This document shows, piece by piece, positions 49,913 to 54,577 of a stretch of 64,000 bases of DNA. How positions within the stretch are numbered: position 1 is the first letter of the stretch; every line of letters starts with the position of its first letter. The position numbers were made by a program, and so were the translations under genes. The stretch lies in sequence record NC_019401.1; one strand, given 5' to 3'. The notes under the pieces were generated by a model. That model was not told the DNA's origin, made no database searches, and saw only the letters and a list, made by a program, of their open reading frames with translations.

Positions 49913-50446
49913 ATGCACAAAAAAGAATTATTAAAAGCTATTCTTGAAGCAATCGCTCCTACCGATGTAGAATCATCACACTTACAGACGATAGAACATA
50001 ACGGAAAAGAATTATACATTACCTTTAAAAATGGCAGTACTTATGAATATGACAACGTACCGGAAGCACTAGTACGTCAAATGTTGAAAGTTGACAGTAA
50101 AGGAAAGTTCTTGTGGCGTTACATCCGTGACAAATATCCGTACCGTCAAGTTAAATCAATCCCACAACACAAATTTGATACGAACCCTGATGCCGTAAAA
50201 CCACGTTTGAAATATAATGTTGAAACTGGTGAATGGGAAGATGCATTGAAACCAGATGTATTAAAAACCGTTGAAGTTCCAGTTGGTCATGAATTCCGTG
50301 CACCAGATGGTGATACTTATACCTTCCAGGGTAAACAATGGAAAAATAAACGTACTGGTCGAGTTGCTAAACGTGAAATCAGTCAAAAGATGACTGATAT
50401 TGCGAAACGTATGATTAAGTTAAAGGGGAAAGATGATGAGATATAA
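49913..50446 (+). CDS. KTSC-domain protein
   Basis: [11 protein letters not shown]...[17 protein letters not shown]...[14 protein letters not shown]. Confidence 0.85.
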
Positions 50447-52043
50447 TCAGCTTCAGGAAGCAATCATTAAAGTACCACCTGAAATCTTAAACAAGGTGAA
50501 TATGTACGTTGCCTCGTACTTGTACTTTAAAATTAAACAGTACTTGGATAGATTAGATTTATTCGTATCTCCTAATATGAGTCAAGAAGAACGCGAAAAA
50601 ATTATCCAAGATGCTAAAAACACTTTAGGAAAGCTTCGTTCACAATACGGGGCGAAAAACATTTCTGCTGAAACTGCAAATAATCTTATAGATAAAAGTA
50701 TTGATATTCCATTCGATGTAGAGAAATTCTTTAGCGAGTTAAACTACAAAGGCGTAAATCCAGGTCTTGTATCATTACTAAAAGATAGATTGAAACTATC
50801 ATTACTAATTGCAAGTTCAGGTAGAGGAATGGCTGGCTCAAAAGAACAACACGGTAGTTATTCACACTTAGTTACAGTTGTTGTTGGTAGATTGGGACCA
50901 AGACCTTCATTTCTTGAAAACGCAAGCGATATTATGAGTACTACTTATCATGAATTGCAACATGTTGTTCAATCGATGGCGATTAAAAATATCAGCAATA
51001 ATGATAAACAATTGCACAGAAATGATGGTTATGATAAACATGAAGAAAACTACGAAGAATACTATACCAGTGGAATAGAATATACACCACAGTTAGGTAA
51101 TGTTATTGATTCAGTAAATCTAGAACTAGAAAAAAGTACTTTGAAAGATGAACTAAATCCTGATAAAAATAAAGCCATCAACGATGCTATAAAAATTGTA
51201 GTGCAGAGAGACACTTCAGCTAGATTATTCCTAACTCATCTTTATCGTAAGAAACCAGAATTGTACAAAAAAGCATTATCTGCTGTATACAAGTACGTTT
51301 CTCCGATTTATGACAGCTATAAAGAAAAGGGAATAGACTATGCATTCACTGAAATTGAGCCAGAAGAACTAGAAACAAATATTGACATAATGCTTTCAGT
51401 ATACAAATTAATGTATAATAAAGATGATTATAAAGTTAAAGCATTCGGTCGGTCGTTGGATTCTATTAGTTCCCTATCTATAAGTTCAGTGAACTATAAC
51501 AAAAATGAAAGATGGAGAATTGAGCTAAGTAAAAACTCAATTAAGAAGGATGGATACTATCTAAATATATATTCAACAGATCCAGAATATCAGGAAATGG
51601 AAAAGCTTAACGCAAAAGAAGTACTAAATCTTTTTGGGATAATCTCAACAAATGCATGGTACGATGCAAGTGATATTATTGATGATATAGAATTTATTAC
51701 TGGTCAGCGAAAAGAAGTGACCAAAGAATCACTTCATGATGTTATACAGTCATTATCAGATGATGCGAAACAAATGAATGTTCCATTTGAAATAACTGGC
51801 GACAACTCTTTCAATGCAATGAATCATACCTTCACGATTAGTAAAGTAGAGGATAGTTCTGAAAAAGTTGATATTAACATGGACGGTGAGAATAAAGTAT
51901 TTTATGTTTGGACGTTAAAACAATTTTTAGTTGCTTTCCAAATGATTATACGTTTCTATTCTAACTACCCTGACGAAGTTGATCAAATACTCAACAAGGA
52001 TACTTTATACGTTGAGGTTATGGCAAGTTTAAGGAGATTATAA
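50433..52043 (+). CDS. HExxH-containing putative virion protein
   Basis: YHELQH and YYTSGIE; leader [15 protein letters not shown]. Confidence 0.6.
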
Positions 52044-54577
52044 TGCCAAGCAAATCAAAGGCTCAAGCTCATTTGATGGCGGCTGCTGCACACAATCCAG
52101 AGATTGCAAAAGATGCAGGTATACCACAAGATGTAGCTCATGATTTTAATCAAGCTGATAAAAAAGAAGGAACCTTGAAAAAAGGTTCCGATGCACCAGA
52201 ACATGTTACTGAAGAACTTATCAATGAAGCAAGTGGTGTAGGTATTTTAAAAGTACCTCCAACATTATTAAAACAGTTTCAGCGTATTGTTTGCTCCATT
52301 CTATTAACAATGGGTGTGATGAGACAAAAAGAACTATCTGAAGCTGGTTATTCTGAACAGGTAACTGCATTAAACACATTCTTAAAACGTTATCAGAACA
52401 AATATAATGCTTCTGTACTATCACAAGCGGCGATGAAAAAATATATAAACAGTATTAGTACTGTTAATGTAGATACCGAAACCGTATTTAACGAACTTCC
52501 ACAAAGTCTTAAAAACCGTGAGGGTGTAAAGGATTCATTATCAAACTTGAAATTGAGAATTTTGCTAAGTAATCAAGTTTCTGGAATCTATGGAAGTAGT
52601 CAAGATAATCACACTGGTAGTTTAAATATTCAGACTATTGCAATACCATCATATTATCATGACTTCAAAAATAGAACAGTTGAAGAAATTGCAAATACCA
52701 TGTCACGTGTTCCTGGAACCGTAGAACATGAATTACAACATGCAATGCAGAATGCAGTACTTGGTCGTTTGAATAAACATGATAAACAAGTTGAACAAAA
52801 ACCCGGTTATTCTGACCACGGTGATGCATATTATGCAAGTGGGGTTGAATTTGGTACTCAAGTAAAAGATTTAGCGAACTATGCAAAAAACTGGCTTAAC
52901 GAAAATCCTGATGAGCTTACTGGTTCCAAAACAAAAGATATAAGTAGTGCTATTAAGTATGCGTTATCGACACACAAAGGAACTATTATCCAAGCACTTA
53001 GAAAGTACCAACACGATGACCGAGCTAATAAGGCTATGAAGTTAATTTATCGTGAAGTTAGTGATTTCTACGAGAATGAGTTTGCAGATCAAAGTGACAG
53101 CGGTAAGTTGGATAGGACTGAGAAAGACGATTTTGAAGATACTGACAATCATGCAAGAATGTTAGAATATCCAGAACCTGGCGATTCACTACTAGGAGAT
53201 TTGTGGTTATCAATAAATCGATACTACGGTGAATCACCAAGAGTCATGGGATATTATGATGATATTAAAGAACTTATTTTCAAACGTGATTACGGGGAAA
53301 TTATTTTCGAACAAGCTTCTAATGGTGGTGCTCATATGTATCTTAGAGTACCAGGTAATAAAGAGAAATCGTTTCATATAGAGTTACGACCTGAAGATCT
53401 TAAAAGTTTAATTCCTGATGTAGCATATTTCACTAATCTTCAAACAGTACATAAACTTAAAGACAGAATTGAGCAAGATCAGATTCCTAATGTAAATTTA
53501 GAAAGTGCATATTATGATATTAATGACGTAATTGAAACAGAAGAAATGTTCAATACTGATTCGAATAAAAAAGTTTCTGCTCAATACGATGAAGAAGATG
53601 GAAACGTTTGGGTATCTTTTAATGGTGCACGTCAGCATATGTATATTCAAGAAGGTGGTAAAGACTATTTTGTTGGATATAGTGATGGAATGACACGATG
53701 CAAACAGAAAGAACTAAGGAAATGTTTTGAAACGCTTATTAGTTTCTATTTCAGTAATAAAACAAATACGAAAATGATAAACAAGATGTTGAAACACATC
53801 ACAAATGATCAGTTTACTGTTGAATCAATAAAACAGTATGCCGATTACTTAAATGAATTGTATGAAGAACCAGTTGAAGAATCTAGTATGCGTAGTTTAG
53901 CTGACATAGTTCAGAATGCAGAACTAGAACATGATATTGATGATGCAAATGATCAAGAACTTATTAATAAAGGTGTTCTTGATGAAGATGCTGATGAAGA
54001 ACAAGAATATGATCTACAAGGTAAGCCAGTTGAATCTGGACAAAAATCTGCCCCTGTAAATGCAGGAACAAGTACTGAGAGATTATCTGAAATGCCTCTA
54101 CAATATGATTCGTTTATGGGTATGGACCCACAAGTATATGTTGATAACAGTGCAAGGAAAAGTCCATATAAGAATATGACACCAGTTAAAGATCATGGTG
54201 AATGGACAACTTATAAAGGGCCAGATGGATATATGGCTTATGACAATGATACCGGTGAAGCATTAGCTGCGGTTGAAGGTCATGAACACCACGGATGGTT
54301 CAATGTTGATGTTACTGCATCAAGTCGTCATGTCAAGGGTGTAGTATATCAAATGTTTATGGATATTGTAAAAGTCGAAGGTACACCAATCCTAAGCGGG
54401 CGGTTGCAGTCGGATGATGCAATTAAATTCTGGAAACGTTTAATCCAATCACACAAAGTATTTGTGGTAGCAAATGATGAAGTACTTCAACAAGCTACAC
54501 CAGAAAAATTCCATAAGTACTGGAGTGATGAAGAAGGTTCTCCACAATCGCAGTTCCAATTCTTACTAGTCAAATAA
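52043..54577 (+). CDS. Multidomain putative virion protein (HExxH domain plus possible C-terminal GNAT-like domain)
   Basis: LINE-ASGVGILKVPP; EHELQH and YYASGVE; C-terminal ILSGRLQSDDAIKFWKRL. Confidence 0.6.
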   Translation: MPSKSKAQAHLMAAAAHNPEIAKDAGIPQDVAHDFNQADKKEGTLKKGSDAPEHVTEELINEASGVGILKVPPTLLKQFQRIVCSILLTMGVMRQKELSEAGYSEQVTALNTFLKRYQNKYNASVLSQAAMKKYINSISTVNVDTETVFNELPQSLKNREGVKDSLSNLKLRILLSNQVSGIYGSSQDNHTGSLNIQTIAIPSYYHDFKNRTVEEIANTMSRVPGTVEHELQHAMQNAVLGRLNKHDKQVEQKPGYSDHGDAYYASGVEFGTQVKDLANYAKNWLNENPDELTGSKTKDISSAIKYALSTHKGTIIQALRKYQHDDRANKAMKLIYREVSDFYENEFADQSDSGKLDRTEKDDFEDTDNHARMLEYPEPGDSLLGDLWLSINRYYGESPRVMGYYDDIKELIFKRDYGEIIFEQASNGGAHMYLRVPGNKEKSFHIELRPEDLKSLIPDVAYFTNLQTVHKLKDRIEQDQIPNVNLESAYYDINDVIETEEMFNTDSNKKVSAQYDEEDGNVWVSFNGARQHMYIQEGGKDYFVGYSDGMTRCKQKELRKCFETLISFYFSNKTNTKMINKMLKHITNDQFTVESIKQYADYLNELYEEPVEESSMRSLADIVQNAELEHDIDDANDQELINKGVLDEDADEEQEYDLQGKPVESGQKSAPVNAGTSTERLSEMPLQYDSFMGMDPQVYVDNSARKSPYKNMTPVKDHGEWTTYKGPDGYMAYDNDTGEALAAVEGHEHHGWFNVDVTASSRHVKGVVYQMFMDIVKVEGTPILSGRLQSDDAIKFWKRLIQSHKVFVVANDEVLQQATPEKFHKYWSDEEGSPQSQFQFLLVK

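Follow-up and report, generated by a model that had tools for sequence, protein, structure and literature searches.

Two adjacent genes, gp316 and gp317, in a 64,000-nucleotide stretch of sequence record NC_019401.1 (the window) are best explained as encoding processed, packaged phage proteins that belong to a new zincin-like family of the polyvalent-effector type; their injection and their substrates we infer. The window matches Cronobacter phage vB_CsaM_GAP32 at 100% identity, that phage being a jumbo myovirus of the genus Mimasvirus with a genome of 358,663 bp; window base 50433 corresponds to genome base 236433, and all features described at this locus lie on the + strand. gp316 (GAP32_316, 535 aa, 50436..52043) has two tandem ATGs (50433 and 50436), of which GenBank uses the second, and gp317 (GAP32_317, 844 aa) spans 52043..54577. 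Both are annotated as 'virion structural protein' and match PHROG families of the same description (phrog_18596, E 2e-289, and phrog_22033, respectively). Because these virion proteins share a conserved HExxH...E domain behind a head-protease site, they are probably enzymes carried in the head, and it is probable that the domain itself is a zincin-like metal hydrolase. The complete reading, that gp316 and gp317 are late-expressed GAP32 head cargo with a zincin-like domain, are processed, are likely ejected and act in the host, is one to which we give an even chance.

The shared HExxH domain

An earlier note on this DNA, made from the letters alone, had called the two proteins paralogous, and this holds: BLASTP aligns them with 24% identity over ~300 aa (E 8e-17), and the region common to both is a domain of ~290 aa, comprising residues 9-300 of gp316 (50460..51335) and 63-352 of gp317 (52229..53098). 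The motifs quoted there are also present. In gp316, LQE is followed by Ala-Ile-Ile-Lys-Val-Pro-Pro (residues 6-15 together), and gp317 has INE-ASGVGILKVPP at residues 60-73. HELQH and SG(I/V)E(Y/F)xxQ occur in both proteins, the former at residues 172-176 of gp316 (50949-50963) and 229-233 of gp317 (52727-52741), the latter containing the candidate third metal ligands E215 (51078-51080) and E269 (52847-52849).

Homologues were collected for gp316 (36) and gp317 (29), and HExxH is invariant in 27 and 23 close relatives and in 120 distant ones. A joint alignment of the gp316 and gp317 families leaves E8, P14, S27, L102, G134, H172, E173, Q175, H176, Q179, Y209, G213, E215 and Q219 invariant (gp316 numbering), a conservation well in excess of chance. 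A profile search of 1.84 billion representatives recovered 215 relatives at E <=0.001, most of them stand-alone proteins of 270-320 aa that consist of the domain alone. In the alignment of 120 relatives drawn from these 215, mean column identity is 6% and nothing but the H, E and H of HExxH and the Glu downstream of it stays invariant, a pattern typical of catalytic metal sites; the leader Glu, one Pro, the Gln of HExxHxxQ and two Tyr are nearly invariant. The signature can be written HExxHxxQ ... YxxSGxE(F/Y)xPQ. Judged by sequence, the domain family is distinct and widespread, and is without a name and without a Pfam or NCBIfam model.

The AlphaFold models place HELQH within a helix in both proteins, as the earlier note had supposed. 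In the full-length gp316 model (pLDDT 85, pTM 0.79), long N-terminal helices are followed by strands 120-126, 134-139 and 143-149, by helix 159-186 carrying HELQH, and by helix 213-236, at the predicted start of which stands E215. The gp317 model has the same order, with strands 170-176, 184-188 and 194-200 and HExxH in helix 213-243. This Glu, a candidate third ligand, is invariant and stands at the start of the next helix in the gp316 model; the stretch around E269 of gp317 is of low confidence (pLDDT 41-50). The published zincin-like MPTase core consists of a three-stranded sheet, an N-terminal helix, the HExxH helix and a Glu helix (PMC5512222). By the order of secondary structure in the models, a three-stranded sheet and a flanking helix would precede the active-site helix, and the predicted order in gp316 fits this core.

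Predicted propeptides, prohead protease and virion proteomics

The N-termini of both proteins, which the earlier note had read as head-targeting leaders, do look like propeptides of the T4 prohead-protease type. gp316 starts with an 8-residue leader ending LQE (50436..50459, predicted cut E8/A9), in which residues 1-7 alone have pLDDT <50 and whose site is the sole [LIVM]xE[AGS] in the whole protein. The gp317 propeptide has 62 residues ending INE, with A as the next residue (52043..52228), and is disordered in the model (pLDDT <50 for residues 1-67). Both leaders end in an invariant Glu (E8 and E62), with a hydrophobic P3 in either family. Furthermore, 111 of 139 further relatives (~80%) carry hydrophobic-x-E-(G/A/S)-(L/I)-(L/I)-x-(V/L)-P, the Glu standing mostly at residues 8-10. 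In proteins with an internal domain, the same motif marks its start, always ~150 residues before HExxH; motif Glu and HExxH lie at E301 and H457 in P0097, at 176 and 329 in P0134 and at 331 and 480 in P0181, and P0094 has the motif twice. As the alignments indicate, the protease-site junction is conserved as part of the domain boundary.

A second hydrophobic-x-E/S site in gp317, VEE followed by S, lies at a module boundary (53873..53884); E613, R617 and D621 are invariant there and P3 is hydrophobic throughout the family. The upstream gene product, gp315, likewise has a 12-residue N-terminal stretch ending ILE and followed by A, and its RaK2 homologue keeps IME followed by AIAPTDVE. The T4 gp21 prohead protease is specific for hydrophobic-x-Glu, and T4 head cargo carries leaders of 10-20 residues (PMC5694885; PMC9958956); T4 Alt is processed at ITE-6 and LTE-619 (PMC5694885). 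GAP32 encodes a gp21-type prohead protease of the Peptidase_S77 family (genome 184538-185014, E 1e-22, above the Pfam cut-off), adjoining a scaffold gene and a Gp23-type capsid gene. Head-module proteins have comparable leaders, ending LQE-9 in the core protein and LNE-10 in the scaffold, and the capsid protein has LRE ~38 residues before a conserved GVQPM. A loose leader pattern matches 34 of the 513 GAP32 open reading frames (ORFs) and lacks the specificity needed to demonstrate targeting. Residues 1-48 of gp317 (52043-52186, of the MPSKSKAQA... type) match phrog_16759, a short separate family, with E 5e-18; the propeptide may be a reusable head-targeting tag.

Published mass spectrometry (MS) places both proteins in virions. 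In the paper on phage CBB (PMC5259590, Table 4 and supplement 3), the gp317 homologue CBB_322 gave 30 unique peptides, more than every other virion protein, and the gp315 homologue CBB_320, a KTSC protein, was detected in CBB virions. CBB_320, CBB_321 and CBB_322 are marked there as structural proteins of GAP32, with CBB_322 marked for RaK2 too, so that gp316 is listed for GAP32 virions and gp317 homologues for CBB, GAP32 and RaK2. Peptide-level data are those for CBB_322 in supplement 6 of that paper, and what is said of slice 03 holds for the peptides examined. The most N-terminal peptide of CBB_322 is 71-77, and the tryptic propeptide peptides 7-23 and 24-40 do not appear in the peptide table, semi-tryptic neo-N-termini lying outside the authors' search. 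Three linker peptides (585-647), one of which spans VEE/SS, do not appear there either. Four peptides of the C-terminal domain come from gel slices 05, 07, 08, 10 and 11 only, whereas in the dominant slice 03 (25 peptides, 87 spectra) those examined all fall within residues 71-577, and three C-terminal peptides searched for by name were not found there. The pattern fits removal of the propeptide and a separate C-terminal fragment. Both cleavages are thus supported indirectly, by motif conservation and by the distribution of MS peptides.

The 30 unique peptides of CBB_322 could be taken as a sign of a mainly structural component of the internal head or inner body, which would organise or accompany the packed 359-kb DNA and would use the HExxH...E metal for stability or have lost catalysis. 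The related phage phAPEC6/121Q has a radiation-sensitive inner body whose composition is unknown (PMC7247149), and non-catalytic alpha/beta domains make up more than half of both gp316 and gp317. Strict invariance of four catalytic-type residues over 120 divergent sequences is, however, the mark of an enzyme and not of a scaffold; moreover, the domain is missing from RaK2, a relative of comparable size, and the fusion partners described below are enzymes, not structural modules. We consider a mainly structural role quite unlikely.

The junction also bears on an alternative in which the domain is a processing module and not an effector: it would cut in cis or inside the capsid, at its own (L/I)xE/G(L/I)IKVP junction or elsewhere, to free cargo such as Acb1, ART or GNAT, with no host substrate. 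The motif does accompany the internal domains of P0097, P0134, P0137, P0165, P0173, P0175 and P0181, and occurs twice in P0094; autoproteolytic processing has been predicted as the main role of polyvalent-protein MPTase domains (Iyer et al., PMC5512222); and gp317 is apparently split from its GNAT-like part, to judge by the CBB peptide data. Yet the motif is that of T4 gp21, for which GAP32 encodes a protease of the same type, most family members are stand-alone proteins with a leader of only 7-10 aa and nothing to release, and gp316 has no attached cargo. This alternative appears unlikely, and the preferred reading remains that of head cargo cut by the prohead protease and acting in the host.

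Database searches, fusion partners and modular organisation

Several results weigh against the reading of gp316 and gp317 as processed zincin-like head cargo. The zincin fold proposed in the earlier note was not recovered when the full-length gp316 model was compared with the PDB by Foldseek (best E 0.04, no zincin), nor did that model find a zincin in AFDB clusters, in BFVD, in the ESM Atlas shape search or in the wide VIA search; BFVD returned family members only. Since full-length models weaken single-domain matches, the absent structural match is not evidence against the fold itself. Two profile hidden Markov models (HMMs) of the domain (A3 and A5) gave no match to PDB sequences at E <=10. 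No Pfam model reaches its threshold on gp316 or gp317, Pfam and NCBIfam together give nothing meaningful, and neither MPTase-PolyVal nor any other zincin model of Pfam scores on them at E <=1. A kinship with the SprT-like protein of GAP32 itself was rejected, hhalign with A5 aligning the HExxH helix only (16 columns, probability 4%). HExxH is found in non-protease enzymes as well (PMC13434306). CBB virions yielded no CBB_321, the homologue of gp316 (PMC5259590), and the support for cleavage in the CBB peptide data is indirect, consisting of missing peptides and gel-slice distribution without observed neo-N-termini.

Meanwhile, the weak matches lean strongly towards metallopeptidase families. 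Sub-threshold Pfam matches of the relatives are to DUF6782, a putative metallopeptidase (seven), eCIS_core (six) and SprT-like (four), with DUF3920, BSP, Peptidase_Mx, YgjP-like and DUF2268 in addition; metallopeptidases dominate among the sub-threshold families that most relatives match. AFDB gave weak matches to DUF6782 and DUF2268. With the stand-alone relative P0083 as query, an Atlas shape search gave clusters of Peptidase M48, U49, M78 and M10 at TM ~0.3, and language-model neighbours, all below a reliable score, include M78, SprT-like, Zn_peptidase_2 and anthrax-LF-like clusters as well as the polyvalent-protein domains LPD23 and LPD1. It is therefore highly improbable that the HExxH...E site serves other metal chemistry, as in a cell-wall- or nucleotide-directed hydrolase or an alpha-KG/HExxH-type oxygenase: although the searches gave no significant similarity to any characterised peptidase and HExxH is known outside proteases, metallopeptidases are the group that recurs where weak matches in sequence or shape are to named families, and the predicted order of secondary structure fits a zincin core.

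Membership of the SprT-like family (PF10263) was also considered and discarded, as neither gp316 nor gp317 matches it. The only PF10263 match in GAP32 is a genuine SprT-like metallopeptidase gene outside the window (genome 305439-305945, E 3e-10). CBB and RaK2 have no such gene, and XacN1 has one in its terminal repeat.

In phage-like contigs, relatives of the domain are fused to other modules. P0097 joins the anti-CBASS protein Acb1 (E 1e-39) to the domain, P0094 a LigT/2H phosphoesterase to two copies of it, P0132 the domain to ART-PolyVal (E 8e-16), P0181 ART-PolyVal (E 2e-17) and GNAT to the domain, and P0134 GNAT to the domain; P0198 carries eCIS_core. Modules of the Acb1, ART and GNAT type are a hallmark of polyvalent proteins that are packaged and injected by phages (PMC5512222). 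Unrelated enzymatic domains thus occur within one packaged polypeptide, both in gp317 (zincin-like and GNAT-like) and in the fusions of its relatives. On the metagenome contig of P0097 (L009), genes for an ART-PolyVal protein distinct from the fusion, for an H-NS-like protein and for an RNA ligase all fall within 8 kb.

A bolder version of the preferred reading can be framed from these fusions, in which large phages would inject the domain as a metalloprotease directed against the host or its defences, and the (L/I)xE-G(L/I)IKVP junction would be a portable 'cut here' tag for T4-type prohead proteases, freeing the protease itself and fused Acb1, ART or GNAT cargo in the capsid. We hold this version only tentatively and regard it as rather doubtful; if true, one packaged precursor would give rise to several separately acting early effectors.

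gp317 is itself modular. The zincin-like domain is followed by a middle part of two alpha/beta domains of frataxin-like shape (53120..53866), an acidic disordered linker (53882..54196, pI 4.2, pLDDT <50 for residues 609-693) and a C-terminal GNAT-like domain (54197..54574, residues 719-844) with a predicted GNAT fold. No GNAT family is among the Pfam matches of 16 homologous C-terminal domains at E <=10, and a profile of the gp317 C-terminal domain found no GNAT in the PDB. The C-terminal half of gp316 (51381..52040) similarly comprises two alpha/beta domains, of frataxin/PsiB-like shape. RaK2 ORF156 (305 aa, L011:6574-7491) aligns with residues 1-60 of gp317 (48% identity) and with residues 608-844 (36%, E 1e-42); as it aligns to both flanks, gp317 can be described as an ORF156-like protein with a 550-residue insert. 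This block, made up of the zincin-like domain and the two alpha/beta domains, sits between the Glu-X sites INE/AS and VEE/SS. It is an insertion or deletion relative to RaK2 ORF156, in which the propeptide is joined directly to the linker.

The zincin-like domain is absent from RaK2, occurs twice in each of CBB and GAP32, and is encoded by a single XacN1 gene, which lies in the terminal repeat. Since ORF156 equals gp317 without the insert and RaK2 is without a family member, the domain is an accessory module, and its patchy presence in these genomes suits an accessory, conflict-type gene. The XacN1 gene, ORF117 (L012:4992-5819), encodes a stand-alone family member next to rIIA/rIIB, an RNA ligase, an M23 peptidase and a cell-wall hydrolase; as it lies inside a 66-kb terminal repeat, it is present twice.

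A putative late unit, proposed course of action and known systems

gp316 and gp317 belong to what looks like a four-gene unit, gp315-gp318, because the stop of gp315 overlaps the start of gp316 (ATGATGA) and the stop of gp316 likewise overlaps the start of gp317. A hairpin (49856-49909) marks its upstream edge and a strong terminator (54957-54987), in the form of a terminator-like hairpin with T7, its downstream edge. Its first gene, gp315 (49913..50446), does encode the KTSC protein that the earlier note had placed upstream (PF13619, E 1.2e-13), virion-associated according to the MS literature, and its last, gp318 (54587..54952), a DUF3307 membrane protein (PF11750, E 2.5e-9).

The upstream hairpin has a 14-bp stem (-20 kcal/mol, z -4.76) and a 23-nt loop and is followed by a T run, and the T4-late-promoter-like box AGATAAATA lies inside its loop (49875-49883). 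The earlier note had seen a late-only switch here; the hairpin with the box in its loop is borne out, while late timing is a reasonable inference, supported indirectly by the promoter motif. A late transcript starting a few bases past AGATAAATA would be without the 5' arm and would therefore escape termination. This exact variant has two copies on the + strand of the genome, the other being upstream of the major capsid gene, and other head and virion genes have (T/C)ATAAATA 30-55 nt upstream. TATAAATA is not enriched in the window, with 7 found against 8.8 expected; what proved informative was where (T/G)ATAAATA stands, 30-55 nt ahead of head and virion genes. The capsid-gene copy of AGATAAATA (genome 186330-186400, window ~330-400) is flanked by the inverted repeat TTCTGTA/TACAGAA; the arrangement of a promoter inside a terminator may recur.

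The surroundings of the unit are rich in replication genes (Dda, RNase H, IF3-like, ClpS-like and topoisomerase II), and gp316 and gp317 are located 50 kb away from the head module. Directly upstream are a gene for a ClpS-like adaptor (PF02617, E 9e-11; 49317-49850) and an IF3-like gene (48672-49250). A near-consensus sigma-70-type promoter (TTGAAA, 18 nt, TG-TATAAT) at 54986-55015 follows the terminator and precedes the gene of the topoisomerase II large subunit.

The late expression signal shared with the capsid gene would also suit an assembly-phase enzyme, either a second maturation protease or a chaperone-like factor, that is incidentally trapped in the virion, and jumbo phages of another group carry an extra zincin-like peptidase that has been proposed to act in maturation (PMC7824862). 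Against this stand the distance from the head module, with the genes lying among those for replication, the patchy presence in the clade, and the pattern of propeptide and cleavage, which is that of cargo. An assembly-phase role is accordingly very unlikely, and head cargo acting in the host is again preferred.

For that reading the following course of action is proposed. The gp315-gp318 unit would be transcribed from the T4-type late promoter in the terminator-hairpin loop, and the precursors would enter the prohead by means of their N-terminal propeptides of 8 aa (gp316) and 62 aa (gp317). A T4 gp21-type prohead protease would then cut after hydrophobic-x-Glu at three predicted sites, giving gp316* (residues 9-535, ~61 kDa), an N-terminal gp317 fragment with the zincin-like and the two alpha/beta domains (63-613, ~63 kDa) and a C-terminal gp317 fragment with the acidic linker and the GNAT-like domain (614-844, ~26 kDa). 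These fragments would stay in the DNA-filled head and most likely be expelled together with the DNA, in the manner of T4 Alt and the internal proteins. In the host, the zincin-like part, as a metal-dependent hydrolase, would cut host proteins or cargo delivered alongside it, and host targets would be modified by the GNAT-like module. In this scheme, zinc binding and peptidase activity are predictions, as are ejection and the substrates.

Most head-carried proteins of giant phages have no known function. The analysis offers a family of at least 215 sequence clusters a biochemical proposal, that of a metal-dependent hydrolase, together with a processing scheme of three predicted cuts and a link to the counter-defence modules Acb1, ART and GNAT. 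If active and ejected, such a protein would act as a protease that enters together with the genome, ahead of all phage gene expression. This class of early weapon was predicted in 2017, and a limited literature search found no published test of it for any phage. Furthermore, the junction motif could serve as a tag for loading foreign proteins into T4-type heads, as the T4 leader does. As to the effector system that the earlier note had thought plausible and undescribed, packaging, leaders, the HExxH...E core and effector-type fusions all speak for it, while a significant match to a solved or named zincin is missing; the family is indeed unnamed, whereas its virion association was already known and the idea of packaged zincin-like proteins was published in 2017 (PMC5512222). 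Virion presence and the frequency of zincin-like domains in packaged phage effectors are thus prior knowledge, and the unnamed HExxH...E family, its junction site, the three-cut scheme, the origin of gp317 by insertion, its GNAT-like module and the fusion partners are new here.

Among known systems, the HExxH C1 domain of the N4 virion RNA polymerase (PMC13434306) is similar in lying within a packaged phage protein, one that in N4 is expelled into the host. It differs in being part of a 3500-residue podovirus polymerase and has no detectable sequence relation to the GAP32 family. RaK2 ORF156 (phrog_25121), listed as the RaK2 structural counterpart of CBB_322 (PMC5259590), has the same propeptide and linker/GNAT-like module as gp317 but is without the 550-aa zincin-like and alpha/beta insert. 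With the T4 internal proteins IPI-III and Alt, gp316 and gp317 have in common a short propeptide ending (L/I)xE, a gp21-type protease and residence in the head, and the C-terminal trimming of Alt at LTE-619, besides that at ITE-6 (PMC5694885), corresponds to what is predicted for gp317. They share no sequence similarity with these proteins, the GAP32 module is zincin-like and not ART, and targeting by the leader and ejection are predictions for GAP32. A further likeness is to the MPTase domains of polyvalent proteins (Iyer et al. 2017, PMC5512222; Pfam MPTase-PolyVal), in which HExxH and Glu helices follow a three-stranded sheet and which occur in head-packaged proteins, fused to ART-PolyVal, GNAT and 2H phosphoesterase, with their function being predicted. 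Unlike these, the GAP32 family has its own signature and the (L/I)xE-G(L/I)IKVP junction, consists mostly of stand-alone proteins of ~290 aa and, among the named phage records found, occurs in jumbo phages.

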